Positions 52,663 through 63,008 of a DNA stretch of 64,000 bases are shown here, piece after piece (the first letter of the stretch is position 1; each line of letters opens with the position of its first letter). The stretch lies in the sequence record KT919973.1. One strand, given 5' to 3'. Under the pieces are notes generated by a model. That model had not been told where the DNA came from. It saw only the letters and a list, made by a program, of their open reading frames with translations, and made no database searches. Both the position numbers and the translations under genes were made by a program.

Positions 52663-53595
52663 ATGAAAAGTACAATGTTTTTAAACAACATCACATGCAT
52701 CGATCACGCATACGTTGATGAAAACGGTAAAATTAACGGTATGAGTTACAATCTATGTGTTGAAATCACCGGCGAAGTAGATGAAACTGAGCAAGTCGTA
52801 ATTGACTTCAGCGGTTGCAAGAAAGCGATCAAGCAGTTAGTAGACGAATCTGAACACGCAATTGATCACCGTCTAGTTCTTGTCAACGGATACAGTGAAT
52901 ATGTGTTAAGCGATATTGAAAATCGTGACCGTACACAAATCGACTCTCCGTTATTCACTGCTGTTTCGTCTGTCAATGACTGGTATCAAGAGATCGTCGA
53001 TGTATCGCTATTCGATACTGATCTTCACATCCCGTCGGATACGCTGTACATGAACTATCTAACCGAGTATCTTGAAAATATGTTGCTGAAGCAGCTTAAA
53101 CTACAAGGCTATCCGGTCACACACGTCACTGTAGAGCTTTCAGAGAGCTTTGACTTGCCATCATGGGCAAACACGCACGTTTCATTTCATTACGCTCATG
53201 GCTTGCGTTCTAGCTCTTCTTATGGGTGTCAGAACATTGCACATGGACATCGTTCGTTCATTGCAGTTGATGCCATGTTAAACAGTCGTGGTCGCAAAGT
53301 ACTGGAGCGCATTGCTGAAGAAATGAGCGGCTACATCGTATGGAACGACAATCTAACTGCGGAAGGTGCGGTAGCGTATTGTTCACAGCGTGGTAATTTC
53401 TATTTGAACATCGATTCAGAAGAAACAATCGTAATCAACACTGAAACTACAGTTGAAAATCTCGCGAACTACATTGCAAAAACATACGAAGACGAGTTTC
53501 AGCGTATGGGTGTACAGCGTGTATGGGTATCTGAAGGTCTTTCGAAAGGCGCAGTCGTTGACATCAAAATCAACAAAGAATTACTCTATAAGTAA
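52663..53595 (+). CDS. queD: QueD-like 6-carboxytetrahydropterin synthase (double-length)
   Basis: DHAY, VVIDFS, DHRL, CQNIAHGH, TTVEN and SEG T-fold motifs; adjacent to folE. Confidence 0.75.
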   Translation: MKSTMFLNNITCIDHAYVDENGKINGMSYNLCVEITGEVDETEQVVIDFSGCKKAIKQLVDESEHAIDHRLVLVNGYSEYVLSDIENRDRTQIDSPLFTAVSSVNDWYQEIVDVSLFDTDLHIPSDTLYMNYLTEYLENMLLKQLKLQGYPVTHVTVELSESFDLPSWANTHVSFHYAHGLRSSSSYGCQNIAHGHRSFIAVDAMLNSRGRKVLERIAEEMSGYIVWNDNLTAEGAVAYCSQRGNFYLNIDSEETIVINTETTVENLANYIAKTYEDEFQRMGVQRVWVSEGLSKGAVVDIKINKELLYK

Positions 53596-53662: not shown

Positions 53663-54337
53663 ATGTTAGACAAAAATAAAGTAGATCCAATTCTTGGACA
53701 AAAAGTTGAAGCGCATCTTCGTGAAATCGGAATGCACACGCCGACTGTTGAAAACGGTCTAACTGATGATGAAAAGAAAGTAATTCTTGAAGATCGATTC
53801 ACTGACATCATGCAAGCTCTAGGTCTTGACCTTACTGACGATTCGCTTGTTGATACACCGAAGCGTTGGGCTAAGATGATGGTCAATGAACTCATGAGCG
53901 GTCTATCACCAGATATGTTCCCTAAATGTACTGCTGTAGACAACAAAATGAACTACGATCAGATGGTTTGTGAAAAAGGCATTACTGTTCTTTCACAATG
54001 TGAGCATCACATCGTAACAATCGACGGCTTTGCAACAGTCGCATATATCCCAAATAAGAAAGTACTTGGTCTTTCTAAGATGAATCGCATCGTCGAGTAC
54101 TTTGCTCGACGCCCACAGATTCAAGAGCGTTTGACTGTTCAAATCGCTGAAGCACTGAAGTTCATTCTTGAAACTGAAGACGTGGCGGTGATGTTAGACT
54201 GCAAACATTATTGTGTCAAAGCGCGTGGTGTTGAAGACAACAACTCAAGTACTGTTACAAGTCATCTATCAGGTGCGTTTAGAAATGAGCCTGAAGCACG
54301 AGCAGAATTTATGTCTCTTGCTCGTTCACAGGCGTAA
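53663..54337 (+). CDS. folE: GTP cyclohydrolase I
   Basis: DTPKR, SQCEHH, GLSKMNR, RPQIQERLT and HYCVKARGV. Confidence 0.96.
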   Translation: MLDKNKVDPILGQKVEAHLREIGMHTPTVENGLTDDEKKVILEDRFTDIMQALGLDLTDDSLVDTPKRWAKMMVNELMSGLSPDMFPKCTAVDNKMNYDQMVCEKGITVLSQCEHHIVTIDGFATVAYIPNKKVLGLSKMNRIVEYFARRPQIQERLTVQIAEALKFILETEDVAVMLDCKHYCVKARGVEDNNSSTVTSHLSGAFRNEPEARAEFMSLARSQA

Positions 54338-55010
54338 CGTACCAATCTTTGAACTTAGCCGATGTGTATTTCACGCATCGGTTATACACAGTAACATTAG
54401 TGGTATTATTAGCTTCGGCTGCTAAACGAGACGATTCAAACACCCCGTTTGGCGTGTGAAATAGATACTTCGATTGCGGGTTTTGACTCCCGACTTTAGA
54501 CTTAGCGAGTTTTCGCTTATGTTCTTCAGTTTTTGTCGTTCCCTTCAGAACACCTTTGCTCTTCGCAACATATTCACCACGAAGATAGCGTTCGTCGTCA
54601 ACTCGAATGTATTCAGTTTCACCAGTAGCAATGCATATCGCAGCAAACTTACCTATATGATGCTTTGCAGCATCTTTTCTAGCATCTTTTGTCATCGACT
54701 CAAATAGCCTAGAGTTCATATTGAACTCGCGTTGCTGTGAGCCGTTCGACATATTGAATGCTGTTAGTGCAAACTTCAGGCGATGTTTCAAATTTCCATT
54801 GAACATTTTAGCCAATAGCAAATGAGCTATATAATGCTCACGTGCTGTCAATCGCACTAGGTTATGTGATTCATCACTACCACCCGCACATTTAGGTAAA
54901 ATGTGATGTTTTTCACTATAGCCGTCGGGTGTGTTTTGAATTCGATTCTCGATTAGAGAAATGTACCATTTCGTGTATTTGTTTAGTATAAGATTGTCGT
55001 GTGTTAACAT
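54309..55010 (-). mobile_element. Free-standing HNH homing endonuclease (Mob-like)
   Basis: EKHHILPKC.GGSDE..NLVRLTAREHYIAH; NUMOD3-like TEEHKRKL; C-terminal FESSRLAAEA helix; antisense to the cluster. Confidence 0.9.
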
Positions 55011-55043
55011 TGTACTCTCTTTAAATAAGCATTACTGTGTTAA

Positions 55044-55051
55044 TATTTATA
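55044..55051 (-). promoter_or_regulatory. T4-type late promoter for the HNH gene
   Basis: Exact TATAAATA on the minus strand, 33 nt before the ATG. Confidence 0.75.
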
Positions 55052-55072
55052 ATTTTTAAGACGAGGTTCACA

Positions 55073-56449
55073 TTGATAATTGAATACGTTATGTCTGCGA
55101 CGGGTCATGCTCGTCTTGGTGCAGCACATAAACTAATGGACGTGGTTGACACGTCCTATTTGCGTAAAATACTAGACGCAGCACAAGATCTCGACGGTGT
55201 TCATAAAATCAGTATGTTGTATAACGCATACACTGAAAAGAAAGTCGGTAAGCAAATTAAAGACTTGTTCGGTGATTCTGTATACAAGATTCATGTCGAT
55301 TCTGGCGGTCTTCAGATTGTTAACTTAGGTCTAGAGAATACACCAGAACTTCGTAAAGCAGTTTACGAGAATCAAGCAGAGTCTGGTGATATTGGCATGT
55401 GTTTCGATGAAATCCCGTTGCACAATGAAGCACAAGGTGGTGGTTCTGCTCGTATCAACACGAAAGACAAGGTCTTCATGTATGATCTAGCGTACAAATA
55501 CGGTGTTAAAACAGGTAAGAACATACGCGCTCAGATTGAAACATATCTTGAGAAAGAAAGCGATTGTAAACCGTACATAATCTTACAAGGCAACTCAGAC
55601 GATGACTTTAAGGCATTTAGTGATGGTATAATGTCACAACTTGAAGGCGTTGAGCATCACATTGCTGGGTGTGCTGCTGCCGATACATGTATTGGTAATG
55701 GCGTGCGTGAGTCTATTGACATGATGAGTGTCATTCCGAAGCTCAATATCCCAGATAAAGCAAAGAAATCTGTGCATATGCTAGGTGTCGGTTCTGTTAA
55801 GCGATTGTTGCCTGCTGTAGCTCTTATCAGAAGCGGTTATTTCGGTGATGATTTTCACATTAGCTACGACTCATCAACTCACACTGGTTGTTTAACCAAT
55901 CGTGAATACACAGATAAGCTCGGTCGTCGTCGTAAGATCTCAGGTCACGGTATCTTTAAAGATGGTAAGAAATTACCGTCGCGTGAACTAGATGAAATGC
56001 TAGATGAAGTGTGGGGTCGTTTCGGTCATGTGTTACCTCGGGGTAAAGAAGAGTTCAAAGAGTTCGCAACACGATTGTGGTTGAAAGAACTCGACAAAGA
56101 AACGATGACAGACGAAGATATTGTGTTTGAAGTTGCTTGTAATATGTGTATAATCTTATCACAAGTCAATAATTTCCAAGCAATCATCTCCGAAACTCTT
56201 GACTTGAATACACCGAAAGCAGTTGACTTATCATCATTCTTCGGCGGGGTTGTAGAAGAAAAAGAACCACAAGAAGGGTTTAAGAAATGGTCTTCGATTC
56301 GTCGTCTAGACGTTTTAGATAAACTACTTGATGTGAAAGACGTTGCTGCATATCAGCGATGGCACGCAAGTCATATTGACAAGCTACCATCTATGCGTAT
56401 TCGTCGCGGTACAACTGCTGAATTCCCAGCTTTCAAAGAACAAGAATAA
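55073..56449 (+). CDS. dpdA: TGT-fold deazaguanine transglycosylase (DpdA/DpdA2-like, probably DNA-targeting)
   Basis: Probable TTG start at 55073 after GAGG; HVDSGG, MCFDEIP, ILQGN, HMLGVG and SYDSS motifs; embedded in the folE/queD/queC/queF cluster. Confidence 0.75.
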   Translation: MIIEYVMSATGHARLGAAHKLMDVVDTSYLRKILDAAQDLDGVHKISMLYNAYTEKKVGKQIKDLFGDSVYKIHVDSGGLQIVNLGLENTPELRKAVYENQAESGDIGMCFDEIPLHNEAQGGGSARINTKDKVFMYDLAYKYGVKTGKNIRAQIETYLEKESDCKPYIILQGNSDDDFKAFSDGIMSQLEGVEHHIAGCAAADTCIGNGVRESIDMMSVIPKLNIPDKAKKSVHMLGVGSVKRLLPAVALIRSGYFGDDFHISYDSSTHTGCLTNREYTDKLGRRRKISGHGIFKDGKKLPSRELDEMLDEVWGRFGHVLPRGKEEFKEFATRLWLKELDKETMTDEDIVFEVACNMCIILSQVNNFQAIISETLDLNTPKAVDLSSFFGGVVEEKEPQEGFKKWSSIRRLDVLDKLLDVKDVAAYQRWHASHIDKLPSMRIRRGTTAEFPAFKEQE

Positions 56450-56450
56450 T

Positions 56451-56488
56451 AAAATGGGTTGACAATTGTCAACCCATTTTTGTATAAT
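56451..56488 (+). promoter_or_regulatory. Terminator/early promoter cassette
   Basis: AAAATGGGTTGACA-AT-TGTCAACCCATTTT; TTGACA (56459) and TATAAT (56483). Confidence 0.8.
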
Positions 56489-56519
56489 GCATATTGGTTA
56501 CATTTAAGAGAAAAATATA

Positions 56520-58178
56520 ATGAGTAAAAGCGATTACTATGTGTATCTGTTAATAGACCCTCGAACAAATAAAGTATTTTATGTAGGAAAGGGTAGGAAT
56601 GAACGTGCTAAGTTTCACGAATCCGAAGTTCGTCGAGATATTTCAAGCAACCGAGTACTAAATTCAGCAAAGAAAAAAGAAATTAACGACATCATCAAGA
56701 GTGGTTATGATGTCGTTATTAAAATAGTCAAAGACAATTTAACTGAAGATCTTGCATTCGGTATCGAATCGAATCTCATTGAATCATTTGGTATCGAAAA
56801 TCTATCAAATGCAGTACGCGGGCATCATAGAGAAAATTGCGAGCGTTTTAAACTGTCAATGTCATTCGACTCTGAATTGTCATCTATATATACAACAACA
56901 CTGTACAACGTATTCAATCGAGCATTTTCGAATGACTACAATGGTAATAAGTGTCAATCTCATTTAATTTCAAATCATAATGTACTAAGAACAATGCTCA
57001 AAGCAGTCAACATGATTGACAATGACGGTATGTGGCGTAACACATCGCGTACAGTATTATGTGTTGAATGTATTGAAGTTGTTTACCTTGCATATATGTT
57101 AGGTGCAGATATGAGTAAGATAACATTTGCCACATCGTCATTAAAAAAAATTGAATGGGTTTCAGAACGATTCGGTATTAGAACACAATACAATGTATTA
57201 GGAGCAGTCATGGAAAAATTTGACGTGTGTATTATGAATCCACCATACGAACGAACACAAGGGAAACTGTTTGTTGAGAAATGCATGGAATATGCGCATG
57301 AAGGTGTTATCATCGGGTTAGCTAACTTAGTTATGGACTATTGCAAATACACACGCGGTACGTCGCAGAAAAACCCAGCGCAAAACTTTTCACAAACGTT
57401 ATTAGATCGTTCGCGTGAAATTTACATGACGAATAACACGCTCGTAGACGGCACGACTATTTTCAGCGCAAACATGAAGAACATGATTATAATTGCCTCA
57501 TGGGATGCAAATGAGACAAATTCAACAAAAGTAATCAACTATCAAACGGGCAAGCAAACTGTTGTGAAACGAGGTGAACGAGTCTCTTTCTTATTAGATC
57601 AAAAGAACAAAGAAATAGTTGATTCCCTGCACGAAATATTCAAAGAACGTAAGCCTTTAATTGCTGACGATAATGTACAACTTTTCCAAAAAGGTCGTAT
57701 CGTTGATAATGAACGTTTCAAAGGTATCAACTCGATCACGTACCCGATTCATGTTCAACTATGTTCTGCCGAAACATCACCGGCGTCTGGTGGAGATAAA
57801 ACGACTCAAATCGGTGCGTTAGATAGTGTATCTGCGATGATGTTTAACAAAACATTCACTCATGATAAAATAAACAACTACAAAGACATTCAATCACGCA
57901 TTGAAGAAGAACAAAGAACAATCAAACGTGGTAGTTGCGAGAATAACCCGTTAATTGCCGCCTTCAAAACAGAAGAAGATGCTAAACGAATGTTCGATTG
58001 GTTTAAAAACCCATTGATATGTCTATACGCTCTTCATACTGATTATATGCAACACGGGTATGGTATCAATACAGTCCCTATGCCATTCTGTACAATCGAA
58101 GAATTGATTGATATGGCGGGGTTGACACAAGAACACATAGAATACGCACAAAAAGCATATGAGGGTTATGCGGAATGA
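56520..58178 (+). CDS. GIY-YIG nuclease fused to an amino-methyltransferase catalytic half and a TRD-like C-terminus
   Basis: YVYLLIDPR...FYVGKG...R..H...E...N; KFDVCIMNPPY (motif IV); no recognizable intact motif I. Confidence 0.7.
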   Translation: MSKSDYYVYLLIDPRTNKVFYVGKGRNERAKFHESEVRRDISSNRVLNSAKKKEINDIIKSGYDVVIKIVKDNLTEDLAFGIESNLIESFGIENLSNAVRGHHRENCERFKLSMSFDSELSSIYTTTLYNVFNRAFSNDYNGNKCQSHLISNHNVLRTMLKAVNMIDNDGMWRNTSRTVLCVECIEVVYLAYMLGADMSKITFATSSLKKIEWVSERFGIRTQYNVLGAVMEKFDVCIMNPPYERTQGKLFVEKCMEYAHEGVIIGLANLVMDYCKYTRGTSQKNPAQNFSQTLLDRSREIYMTNNTLVDGTTIFSANMKNMIIIASWDANETNSTKVINYQTGKQTVVKRGERVSFLLDQKNKEIVDSLHEIFKERKPLIADDNVQLFQKGRIVDNERFKGINSITYPIHVQLCSAETSPASGGDKTTQIGALDSVSAMMFNKTFTHDKINNYKDIQSRIEEEQRTIKRGSCENNPLIAAFKTEEDAKRMFDWFKNPLICLYALHTDYMQHGYGINTVPMPFCTIEELIDMAGLTQEHIEYAQKAYEGYAE

Positions 58179-58678
58179 CATACAGCGATACGAATCGTTA
58201 TTCAGATGATGTTAGCTTAGAGCGTCGAAAGAAGACAGGTGAAGTATTCACCCCTCTGAATTTCGTTGATTTCATGATCGATCAAAAAAAGCATTTACTG
58301 GAAGCTGGTAAGACATGGTTCGAGCCAAGCTTTGGTGACGGTAATATAGTTTGTCGTATAATCGAACGCAAAATTGATATCGGCGTCGAACCATTACAAG
58401 CAGTTCGAGATGTATACGGTTGTGAATATATGAAAGACAATTATGAGTGTACTCTTCAGAGAATACGTGATATAGTAGGCGAGTCCGATGAACTCGAAGA
58501 GATAATGTCTAATAATCTAGCATTTTGCAACACGTTAGACAAAAACGACCGAAGCGAAGGTCGTGAATGGCCTTCTTGGTTGTTGCAGCTAGACAGAAAA
58601 TGTCTAAGAGAATCAGGCGGGCTTGCGAGTTTTTTCGATTCAAATAATGAAGGTAAAATTAATGACATCAAATTATGA
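58175..58678 (+). CDS. SAM-binding half of an amino-DNA methyltransferase
   Basis: RRKKTGEVFTP (motif X), WFEPSFGDGN (motif I), VYGCE (motif II); no NPPY; ATGA-coupled to 56520. Confidence 0.7.
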   Translation: MTYSDTNRYSDDVSLERRKKTGEVFTPLNFVDFMIDQKKHLLEAGKTWFEPSFGDGNIVCRIIERKIDIGVEPLQAVRDVYGCEYMKDNYECTLQRIRDIVGESDELEEIMSNNLAFCNTLDKNDRSEGREWPSWLLQLDRKCLRESGGLASFFDSNNEGKINDIKL

Positions 58679-59573
58679 TGAAGTATCAGCTATTGCGGCT
58701 GAGCATTTAGGTAAAAAAGCTGGCGATTACAGCGATTTCGTTAATATCGTAGACGTTCGACCAGATTTACTTGTACCCATCCCGCGTGAGCTAAATCGAA
58801 CTGATTATGGTATCACAAACGAAGATTTTGCAGGTTTTGATACATGGCATGGCTTCGAAGTATCGGCACTGACTGAACAAGGTCTGCCTGTATCTGGTAT
58901 GGCGAAAGTCGTGTACCCGAGCGATTCACCGAATATCGTTGAAAGTAAATCAATGAAACTGTATTGGAACAGCTTCAACATGGCTAAAGTCGCTGCGACT
59001 CGTGCTGAAGTACAAGGTGCAATTGAAGCTATCGCGTCGCGTGATCTATCTGAAGTCATCGGTGCTGAAGTACAAGTGAGCTTCTTCACAGTCAGATCAA
59101 CACAACCGCACGGTATGACAGGGTATGCAGAACTCGACAAATACGTATCTGAAGACACTGTATTCGACTCAGAAAGCGGTGCAGATGCTGATTTACTGCA
59201 AGAATCTCACGTGAAGCGCATGAAAGTGTTCACGCCGAATCTACGTTCTAACTGTCGCGTGACGCATCAACCAGATTTCGGTGATCTGTATGTATACATG
59301 AAAGGTGAAAAAACACCAACTATTGACAGTCTCATGCAATACATCGTGTCATTCCGTAAAGAGAATCATTTCCATGAAGAATGTGTTGAAATGATTTACA
59401 AAGCGTTACTTGATAAGTTCGACCCACAAGAGCTTATGGTAACAGCGTTATACACACGTCGCGGTGGTTGGAATATCTGCCCAGCACGTGCAACGCATGA
59501 AGAACTACTACCAGAAGCACTTGGTAGTGAAGTTGTCTCGCACACTAACGGAAGTTGTTTATTCCGTCAGTAA
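58662..59573 (+). CDS. queF: NADPH-dependent 7-cyano-7-deazaguanine reductase (two-module type)
   Basis: ESKSMKLYWNS, LRSNCRVTHQPDFG, FHEECVE and YTRRGG. Confidence 0.93.
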   Translation: MTSNYDEVSAIAAEHLGKKAGDYSDFVNIVDVRPDLLVPIPRELNRTDYGITNEDFAGFDTWHGFEVSALTEQGLPVSGMAKVVYPSDSPNIVESKSMKLYWNSFNMAKVAATRAEVQGAIEAIASRDLSEVIGAEVQVSFFTVRSTQPHGMTGYAELDKYVSEDTVFDSESGADADLLQESHVKRMKVFTPNLRSNCRVTHQPDFGDLYVYMKGEKTPTIDSLMQYIVSFRKENHFHEECVEMIYKALLDKFDPQELMVTALYTRRGGWNICPARATHEELLPEALGSEVVSHTNGSCLFRQ

Positions 59574-59628
59574 TAAGAGCTATGATGAGTGTTCAATTGT
59601 GAGCACTCATATACTTGAGAGGTTAAAA

Positions 59629-60345
59629 ATGAAAGTAGTATCTGTTCTAAGCGGTGGCTTGGACTCAACAATCCTTACGTACAAACTAGTAGATGAATAC
59701 GGCAAAGACAATGTGTTTGCATTATCGTTCTACTACGGTCAAAAACAGTCAATTGAGCTAGAAAAAGCTAAATTGACTTGTCAAAAGCTCGGTATCGAGC
59801 ATCGTCTAATCGACATCTCATTCTTAGGTGAAGTGGTAGCACCTGTATGTGCAAATATCGCTGGTTCAGATGTTGCTATGCCAACTATTCAAGACGTTCT
59901 AGGCGACCCTCAACCGCCAACTGAAGTTCCATATCGTAATATGCTATTGAACACTATCGCGTTCTCATTCGCGCAAGCAAATGGCTGTGCAGCGGTGTTT
60001 ACTGGCATTCAAGTGCATGACGCATACGGTTACTGGGACTGCACACAAGACTTTCTTGACGGCATGAACAATCTATCTGCACTGAATCGTCAACACGAGA
60101 TTGCATTACTTGCTCCGTTCGCTCGTATGTCAAAGGCAGATGAAATCGCTATTGGTGTTAAGCTCGGTGTACCGTTTGAAGATAGTCTAACGTGTTACGA
60201 CCCTAACGAAGCAGGTGAAAGCTGTGGTAAATGTCCGTCATGTGCTGAACGCATCATGAACTTCGGTAAAGCGGGTATTAAAGACCCAGCACCTTACTCA
60301 ATTGACATCCCATGGGAACAAGTATTTGCTAAGGCAGGTCATTAA
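59629..60345 (+). CDS. queC: 7-cyano-7-deazaguanine synthase
   Basis: LSGGLDST, YGQK, VPYRN, YWDC, TCY and CGKCPSC. Confidence 0.95.
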   Translation: MKVVSVLSGGLDSTILTYKLVDEYGKDNVFALSFYYGQKQSIELEKAKLTCQKLGIEHRLIDISFLGEVVAPVCANIAGSDVAMPTIQDVLGDPQPPTEVPYRNMLLNTIAFSFAQANGCAAVFTGIQVHDAYGYWDCTQDFLDGMNNLSALNRQHEIALLAPFARMSKADEIAIGVKLGVPFEDSLTCYDPNEAGESCGKCPSCAERIMNFGKAGIKDPAPYSIDIPWEQVFAKAGH

Positions 60346-62501: not shown

Positions 62502-63008
62502 CTATTCGTCATCTCCATAACCATACTTGTTGTTGTCAAAGTCACAACGCGGGTTATTCAAGAAACTCTTTCTGTAAATCTTTTCCAATTCGCTTTTCTT
62601 CGCACCATCTGGGTACTTAATACCTAGACTGTCTAAATGTTCTTTTTGTTCTTGCAGTTTTAATCGACTGAAGATCTTAGTTTGGTCTTTTGGGTGCTGA
62701 GGGTGATAATCATTATCTGAGTAATCAGCTTCTAGGTATTCTACTAGATTTTTAAGCCACTGAATGTAATCAATTCCACGACCTTTCAAACCACTTCTTG
62801 TAAACTTATGAATCACAACGCCTTCGTAAGTATTGCACGCTCGACACAGAACGCCTCGAATATGCCCCGTGTTGTGGTCGTGGTCAGTATGTGGCGTGCT
62901 TTTCTCTTCACTCAATTTAGTACCGCACAACACACATCTGTCCAATTGATCCATGATTAGTTCATTACGGCATTCTGTCAGTTCTGATTGTTTAAGTTGT
63001 TTGCTCAT
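62502..63008 (-). CDS. 49: Endonuclease VII (Holliday junction resolvase)
   Basis: CVLC...DHDH...RGVLC.AC N..EG, KFTRSGLKG.GIDY..WL.NL..YL..DY and C-terminal K.EL helix. Confidence 0.92.
   Translation of the reverse strand: MSKQLKQSELTECRNELIMDQLDRCVLCGTKLSEEKSTPHTDHDHNTGHIRGVLCRACNTYEGVVIHKFTRSGLKGRGIDYIQWLKNLVEYLEADYSDNDYHPQHPKDQTKIFSRLKLQEQKEHLDSLGIKYPDGAKKSELEKIYRKSFLNNPRCDFDNNKYGYGDDE

Follow-up and report, generated by a model that had tools for sequence, protein, structure and literature searches.

What is the two-gene cassette that lies between a DpdA-like gene and queF in Vibrio phage phi-ST2 (KT919973, genus Schizotequatrovirus), and does its place within the 7-deazaguanine DNA-modification cluster say anything about its function? 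The window analysed here is a 64,000-nucleotide (nt) stretch of that genome (window position = record position minus 186000), and a preliminary description drawn from its letters had read the cassette as a split restriction-modification (RM)-like system coupled to the deazaguanine pathway. The comparisons reported below suggest that the cassette is probably a free-standing element of the homing-endonuclease type, whose targeting module would be a split, permuted Eco57I-type adenine methylase. The two genes, of 552 and 167 amino acids (aa), were found between the DpdA-like gene and queF as described, on the same strand, in different frames and coupled by an ATGA overlap. The parts of the cassette are as follows.

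56450..58661, + strand: inserted cassette, ~2.2 kb, delimited by junction comparison with Va3, PVA23, K566 and metagenomic contig L009
56520-58178, + strand: gene 1, 552 aa, GenBank ALP47356 'hypothetical protein'; GIY-YIG nuclease, relic motifs I-III and motif IV-to-recognition domain
56538..56861, + strand: GIY-YIG nuclease domain of gene 1 (residues 7-114), PD-T4-3/CMoRE-like subgroup; from Pfam, PADLOC, PDB and AlphaFold/Foldseek
57048..57215, + strand: probable relic of methyltransferase motifs I-III (gene 1 residues 177-232), with no glycine loop (VECIE; ATSS); from phrog_3689 and PH1948/METTL5
57210..58175, + strand: Eco57I-type N6-adenine methyltransferase part (gene 1 residues 231-552), motif IV through target-recognition domain; hhalign 98.9%
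57216-57248, + strand: motif IV, KFDVCIMNPPY (gene 1 residues 233-243)
58175-58678, + strand: gene 2, 167 aa, GenBank ALP47484 'DNA methyltransferase'; motifs X, I, II and III, no NPPY

At the junctions, the 29-nt spacer of cassette-less relatives is replaced by the cassette, and the initial codons of queF are changed too. The GC content of the cassette (37.2%) is the minimum of any 2.2-kb stretch in the window (40.8 ± 1.3%).

The N-terminal GIY-YIG nuclease proposed earlier for gene 1 was recovered with Pfam (PF22945, 6e-16), with the PADLOC PD-T4-3 hidden Markov model (HMM; 2.5e-15) and in PDB entries 9u75 and 9u7u (∼4e-9, 28–32% identity, root-mean-square deviation about 3 Å). The AlphaFold model of gene 1 had a predicted local distance difference test score (pLDDT) above 90 at residues 10-100 and was matched by Foldseek to the same two entries at 1e-4; outside the nuclease domain pLDDT was below 50, and that part of the model was not used. 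Entries 9u75 and 9u7u are the 5-hydroxymethylcytosine-specific type IV restriction endonuclease CMoRE (PMC12923530), the closest solved GIY-YIG domain. The likeness to PD-T4-3/CMoRE is confined to gene 1 residues 4-119, and gene 1 falls outside that group, which has a modified-cytosine sensor at the position of the methyltransferase part of gene 1. The GIY-YIG type II enzymes Eco29kI and Hpy188I (PMC1564403) likewise pair such a nuclease with a methylase of matching specificity; in those systems, however, the nuclease holds its own specificity and the methylase is separate and complete, whereas the cassette nuclease is fused to the recognition part of a methylase. GIY-YIG restriction enzymes have been proposed, on sequence grounds, to derive from homing endonucleases that joined a methylase (PMC1564403).

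The remainder of the cassette was assigned chiefly by profile-profile comparison (hhalign), in which family alignments of each gene were compared with eleven complete Eco57I-type methylases from viral contigs. Positions 231-551 of the gene-1 family align to canonical positions 192-516, from motif IV to the C-terminus including the recognition domain (98.9%, E 4e-17, 259 columns), which bears out the recognition-domain-like tail of the preliminary description, and positions 11-69 of the gene-2 family align to canonical 25-85, motifs X and I (97.3%, E 2e-11). The motifs quoted in that description for both genes were found at the places given, including the degenerate VLCVECIE of gene 1 (within RTVLCVECIE, residues 177-186) and, in a gene 2 lacking NPPY, GEVFTP (residues 22-27), FEPSFGDGN (49-57) and YGCEYM (81-86). 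Gene 2 also matches phrog_21201 (2.5e-83), PADLOC MTase_II (2.5e-5) and an M.BseCI profile (0.0017), while a single-sequence search of PDB with gene 2 gave no match. All methyltransferase matches are to gamma-type families (Eco57I, N6_Mtase, MmeI, TaqI-like). Because canonical profiles place gene 2 directly ahead of motif IV of gene 1, the halves are complementary: the mad2 profile is covered by gene 2 at 267-335 and by gene 1 at 353-468, and in the phrog_799 profile the gene-2 and gene-1 homologues of Shigella phage PSD9 occupy 207-276 and 274-325, respectively. The earlier proposal that the S-adenosylmethionine (SAM)-binding part is supplied by the next gene is thus upheld by abutting profiles and also by the fused homologues and the conservation of the gene pair under selection described below. 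A conserved tail, D-x-SEGR-x-[YW]P-x-W, closes gene 2; in the alignment it falls opposite FD..GNPPY of a canonical fragment.

The label 'type IIG-like' survives as a fair analogy. As in Eco57I and MmeI (PMC2731913), a nuclease, an NPPY core and a C-terminal recognition domain are on one chain, here at gene 1 residues 7-114 and 231-552. As a statement of membership the label fails on chain organisation: a complete gamma-order methyltransferase (X, I-III, IV-VIII, target-recognition domain [TRD]) does not occur in one chain, the canonical X-I being present only in gene 2, so that motifs X-I-III lie on a separate, downstream-encoded polypeptide. Unlike type IIG enzymes, moreover, the cassette has a GIY-YIG nuclease, is phage-borne and behaves as a mobile insertion.

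Read across gene 1 and then gene 2, the order of motifs is IV-VIII, TRD, X, I-III, the reverse of the canonical halves; judged by its motifs, the pair encodes a circularly permuted enzyme, a point overlooked in the preliminary description. The same succession defines the beta order, which is present in one chain in the Aeromonas phage proteins P0027-29 and Aeh1p090. Kinship with the beta class was not found, however, as phi-ST2 has two chains in place of a single polypeptide and its matches are to gamma-type families, none of them beta-class. Naturally split enzymes in which two polypeptides form one methyltransferase fold are represented by M.AquI and M.EcoHK31I alpha/beta; these methylate cytosine at C5, are divided at another point of the fold and have neither a nuclease nor a permuted order.

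The Aeromonas phage proteins (415–417 aa) start with FD..NPPY and end in a gene-2-like segment; phrog_11371 covers them over their full length (1e-203), and phrog_21201 matches their C-terminus. The AlphaFold model of P0027 (pLDDT 65, with the N-terminal strand and the C-terminal half confident) matches M.TaqI-like and Eco57I phage methylases in a viral structure library at 5e-5 to 9e-5, along with the KpV477, PKO111 and Ah1 homologues. Proteins of the Aeh1p090/Ah1_00077 type (phrog_11371, 415 aa, uncharacterised) thus share with the cassette the order motif IV-to-recognition, then X-I-III, but have it in one chain, free of a nuclease and with no relic of motifs I-III before NPPY. Both forms occur in the Ah1 genome (L006 and P0027), as a split pair (gp104 and gp103) and a fused 415-aa paralogue (Ah1_00077). 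Matches in BFVD to A0A1D8KU98 (Synechococcus phage S-CAM7, 417 aa) and Q58MW7 (Prochlorococcus phage P-SSM2, 132 aa) suggest, on the basis of predicted structures, that fused-type and gene-2-type relatives may also exist in T4-like cyanophages.

The existence of fused homologues, and of two ORFs (open reading frames) in different frames, could be taken to mean that the pair is a pseudogene in decay, a single methyltransferase gene interrupted by a frameshift at the ATGA. Four lineages, however, keep the split at one and the same domain boundary, each with a junction of its own: the ATGA overlap of phi-ST2, a 1-nt overlap in the metagenomic relative (77% and 83% identical, same site), a 39-nt gap in Aeromonas phage Ah1, where the N-terminus is different and weakly T5orf172-like, and a 17-nt overlap in Shigella phage PSD9. 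The split pair is also found in Klebsiella Jiaodaviruses. For gene 2 there is a separate start codon preceded by GAGGG, and between phi-ST2 and the metagenomic relative the ratio of nonsynonymous to synonymous differences (pN/pS) is 0.13–0.26 in each sub-domain and 0.15 in gene 2, with synonymous sites saturated (pS 0.73–0.89). Both genes are under purifying selection, and four junction types together with that selection rule out a frameshifted pseudogene, a reading to which we give next to no credence. The pair is therefore a real two-subunit design and not a frameshift wreck; from the sequences compared, the split is an old, selected arrangement without a conserved frameshift site. In KpV477-type phages the gene-1 homologue has a single break; it is intact in PSD9, P0026, L011 and PKO111.

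Synonymous divergence is higher in the cassette (pS 0.80–0.89) than in its flanking genes (0.64–0.66) when phi-ST2 56520-58678 is compared with L009 6001-8126, and the cassette alleles may be older than their flanks or have been separately acquired. In the unrelated IMG/VR contigs L015, L019, L022 and L023, an FD..NPPY ORF with a glycine-poor motif I is followed immediately by a small ORF with motifs X-I-II and without NPPY; their N-terminal fusions vary, L022 having a ResIII helicase and others none. A different layout is seen in L024-L038, where an ORF resembling gene 2 and lacking NPPY lies upstream of a complete Eco57I-type methylase. Both kinds of pairing may represent a wider design in which the SAM-binding half is supplied in trans.

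The presence/absence comparison that the preliminary description had proposed was run across 48 related phage records. The cassette was found in two of these (phi-ST2 and PVA23) and in one metagenomic relative, the other records having the 29-nt empty site or another insert. The non-carriers Va3, R11Z and phi-Grn1 share 98.5–99.4% identity with phi-ST2 over the flanks. Va3-type genomes have a clean 29-nt empty site with a different hairpin, and K566 and K567 have an unrelated 341-aa ORF in the same DpdA-like/queF spacer (L004 2949-3974), which marks this spacer as an insertion hot spot. That ORF has weak T5orf172 and RING-like zinc-finger matches, and a hairpin and TATTAT box of its own. In T4-like phages of Klebsiella and Shigella, homologous cassettes are flanked by primase and dCTPase, and presence and absence are again polymorphic: nine Jiaodavirus records have the cassette at that site and about 130 close relatives do not, some of the latter holding another annotated homing endonuclease there. 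The Tevenvirinae homologues of gene 1 belong to phrog_314, 'homing endonuclease', and the PHROGs labels for the pieces of the cassette are 'homing endonuclease', 'DNA methyltransferase' and 'unknown'.

These features closely resemble those of the seg-type free-standing GIY-YIG homing endonucleases of T4-like phages, such as segF, which adjoins gene 56 within the soc/56 spacer of T4 (PMC2988022). An N-terminal GIY-YIG domain, an intergenic site between conserved genes, a promoter and hairpin of its own, patchy presence in close relatives and use of the same sites by other homing endonucleases are common to both, and the spacer between conserved genes shows presence/absence with a clean empty site. 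The cassette differs in that its DNA-binding part is a methyltransferase core and recognition domain rather than a NUMOD, helix-turn-helix or zinc-finger module, and in that the unit includes a second, coupled gene.

The same distribution bears on the possibility that the cassette is a weapon of benefit to the phage, a type IIG-style RM-like system that would cut host or rival DNA at many places at a short site, with the phage itself protected by methylation and the genes spread by ordinary recombination. The Eco57I-type core with its recognition domain, a nuclease domain nearest to that of the defence nuclease PD-T4-3/CMoRE and a strong early-type promoter of its own would all suit such a role. 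A beneficial cassette would be expected to be commoner than two in 48 records, however, and the cassette always occupies spacers that other homing endonucleases use too; the breakage of the Tevenvirinae copy in KpV477-type phages is what would be expected of a decaying selfish element. We consider this explanation improbable.

Less probable still is the proposal that the cassette is an RM-like module coupled to the 7-deazaguanine pathway and telling modified from unmodified DNA. In its favor are the position between the DpdA-like gene and queF and a promoter that may add to transcription of queF-queC. The deazaguanine cluster, however, is core in the genus (PMC12028318) and the cassette is rare, being absent from 46 of the 48 cluster-bearing records, and its homologues occur at unrelated Straboviridae sites (primase/dCTPase, and in Aeromonas phages); the location is therefore a landing site and not a functional link. 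No similarity to Que or Dpd families was found for the cassette proteins, and they are not members of that pathway by homology. The coupling put forward in the preliminary description was accordingly rejected, largely on distribution, and the position within the cluster is incidental, save that queF-queC probably gains early transcription.

A further question is whether the methyltransferase still works. Residues 177-232 of gene 1, in front of NPPY, form a stretch with the strand-helix pattern of motifs I-III in which the glycine loop is missing (VECIE), as is the acid of motif II (ATSS). Homologues match positions 14-80 of the methylase profile phrog_3689 at 2e-5, and the match to the PH1948/METTL5 profile starts within it, while hhalign alignments to Eco57I-type enzymes stop short of it. 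No part of gene 1 is better conserved, and the 77%-identical relative has it unchanged. A relic of this kind before NPPY is missing from the fused, nuclease-free homologues, and none was found upstream of the fused Aeh1 gene or elsewhere in the Aeh1 locus. A Toprim-like reading of the VECIE stretch was unsupported by any tool and was dropped.

With motif I of gene 1 free of glycine and the motif II acid lost, the cassette might be an ordinary homing endonuclease in which a dead methyltransferase-like part serves as a DNA-binding or base-flipping module, gene 2 being a structural accessory or binding SAM purely as a cofactor or regulator. Homing endonucleases need no self-protection once their site has been disrupted (general knowledge; PMC2988022), and single-sequence HMM matches to methyltransferases are all sub-threshold (Eco57I, E=0.0033). 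Against this, the catalytic and SAM-binding signature residues of both halves are invariant over deep divergence: F234, N240, P241 and P242 of gene 1 throughout the family, and NPP[YF] of gene 1 together with F-T, E-P-x-x-G-D-G and the motif II glutamate of gene 2 over about 20–40% identity. Purifying selection acts on both genes, and the nuclease-free fused homologues resemble stand-alone methylases. On balance a dead methylase appears rather unlikely to us.

Considered jointly, the gene 1 relic and the gene 2 tail resemble what would remain of two methylase copies once arranged in tandem. We would tentatively entertain a bolder proposal, in which the cassette is a hybrid of homing endonuclease and RM system whose separate SAM-binding half decides between methylating (own genome) and cutting (a rival), the relic and the gene 2 tail being fossils of the tandem duplication that permuted the methylase.

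For the preferred homing-type element with a split methylase as its targeting module, the following mechanism can be proposed. The cassette was inserted into the DpdA-like/queF spacer of a minority of Schizotequatrovirus genomes. In gene 1 a linker of ∼60 residues tethers a GIY-YIG nuclease to that portion of an N6-adenine methyltransferase, Eco57I/TaqI-type, which comprises the catalytic NPPY and target recognition, and gene 2, translationally coupled to it, would provide the SAM-binding half (X, I, II, III) as a separate chain, the two together rebuilding one circularly permuted methyltransferase core. The methyltransferase/recognition module would locate a specific DNA sequence; genomes carrying the cassette would be marked with N6-methyladenine (m6A) or lack the target site, and unmarked co-infecting relatives would be cut by the tethered nuclease, with repair from the carrier favoring inheritance of the cassette and its flanks.

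Several points weigh against this reading. The modules with which seg-type enzymes usually bind DNA (NUMOD, helix-turn-helix, zinc finger) are absent from gene 1, for which Pfam gave no such match. Flank mismatches relative to Va3 (8 and 30) show no clear gradient and are too few to judge co-conversion. When the P0027 model was compared with PDB by Foldseek, methyltransferases alone were returned, none of them at E<=0.001. If the glycine-free motif I-III stretch of gene 1 itself fills the SAM side of the fold, it would be hard to see where gene 2 docks. Finally, we infer from sequence the physical complex, methylation, cleavage specificity and homing, and likewise the enzyme activity and target site.

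The signals at the edges of the cassette and its two neighbors are as follows.

56451..56480, strand not assigned: hairpin, perfect 13-bp stem followed by a T-run (terminator-like), directly 3' of the stop codon of the upstream gene
56459..56488, + strand: sigma-70-type promoter, TTGACA-18 nt-TATAAT, 12/12 match, with the -35 hexamer inside the hairpin
55073..56449, + strand: upstream neighbor, 458 aa, phrog_10773, outside the cassette; DpdA/TGT-like, queuine-tRNA-ribosyltransferase per other annotators
58662..59573, + strand: downstream neighbor, queF-like (QueF_N + QueF), outside the cassette; start overlapped by gene 2 in phi-ST2 only

The hairpin-promoter that had been noticed at 56451 was confirmed in both its parts, and the promoter is the sole 12/12 sigma-70 match within 54900-59800. 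A hairpin stands in the DpdA-like gene/queF spacer of every relative compared, with a different sequence each time. The added promoter is predicted to drive gene 1, gene 2 and probably, via read-through, queF-queC in carrier genomes, and early transcription of queF-queC is the likely gain. The 17-nt overlap of gene 2 with queF, also reported earlier, is real in phi-ST2 but is not a general feature: it exists because an A-run differs by one base in length from that of PVA23, where the genes meet as TAATG, and in the metagenomic relative they are separated by 12 nt. Searches of Pfam and PDB with the 458-aa upstream gene gave no match, so that the label 'DpdA-like' depends on the annotation of others (PMC12028318).

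Other observations concern the neighborhood. An HNH mob-type homing endonuclease gene (54309-55010, - strand) lies in the next spacer upstream, between GTP cyclohydrolase I and the DpdA-like gene, and on the opposite strand it extends over the 3' end of the cyclohydrolase gene. Phi-ST2, phi-pp2 and the metagenomic relative have this endonuclease gene; PVA23 and Va3 do not. At 62502-62930 (- strand), a 142-aa ORF annotated as 'endonuclease' in phi-ST2 may be the shortened remnant of another homing endonuclease gene; L009 has a 324-aa SegE-type GIY-YIG ORF at that place. The GenBank names of 58662-59573 and 52663-53595 appear to be swapped in phi-ST2, the former being named 6-pyruvoyl-tetrahydropterin synthase, yet having QueF_N and QueF domains, and the latter 7-cyano-7-deazaguanine reductase, yet having a homologue in L009 that matches PTPS weakly.

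The three homing endonucleases listed in the phi-ST2 genome paper do not include gene 1 (PMC5107563), and the present analysis corrects the annotation of a pair recorded as 'hypothetical protein' and 'DNA methyltransferase'. A phmmer search with gene 1 residues 116-552 among 1.84 billion representatives returned two true relatives and a spurious repeat protein (P0025), and our literature search found no description of an architecture combining GIY-YIG with a split, permuted methyltransferase. For the phages that carry it, the insert places a consensus promoter before queF-queC, and the case cautions against reading a role into a location within the deazaguanine cluster. Natural examples of one methyltransferase fold encoded by two genes in permuted order are rare, and this one has fused relatives for comparison; it also bears on the origin of methyltransferase permutations. 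Homing endonucleases and RM systems are commonly classed apart, as two sorts of selfish DNA; the cassette and its Klebsiella, Shigella and Aeromonas relatives are a candidate meeting point of the two, where a homing-type nuclease would use the recognition domain of a methylase to find DNA.

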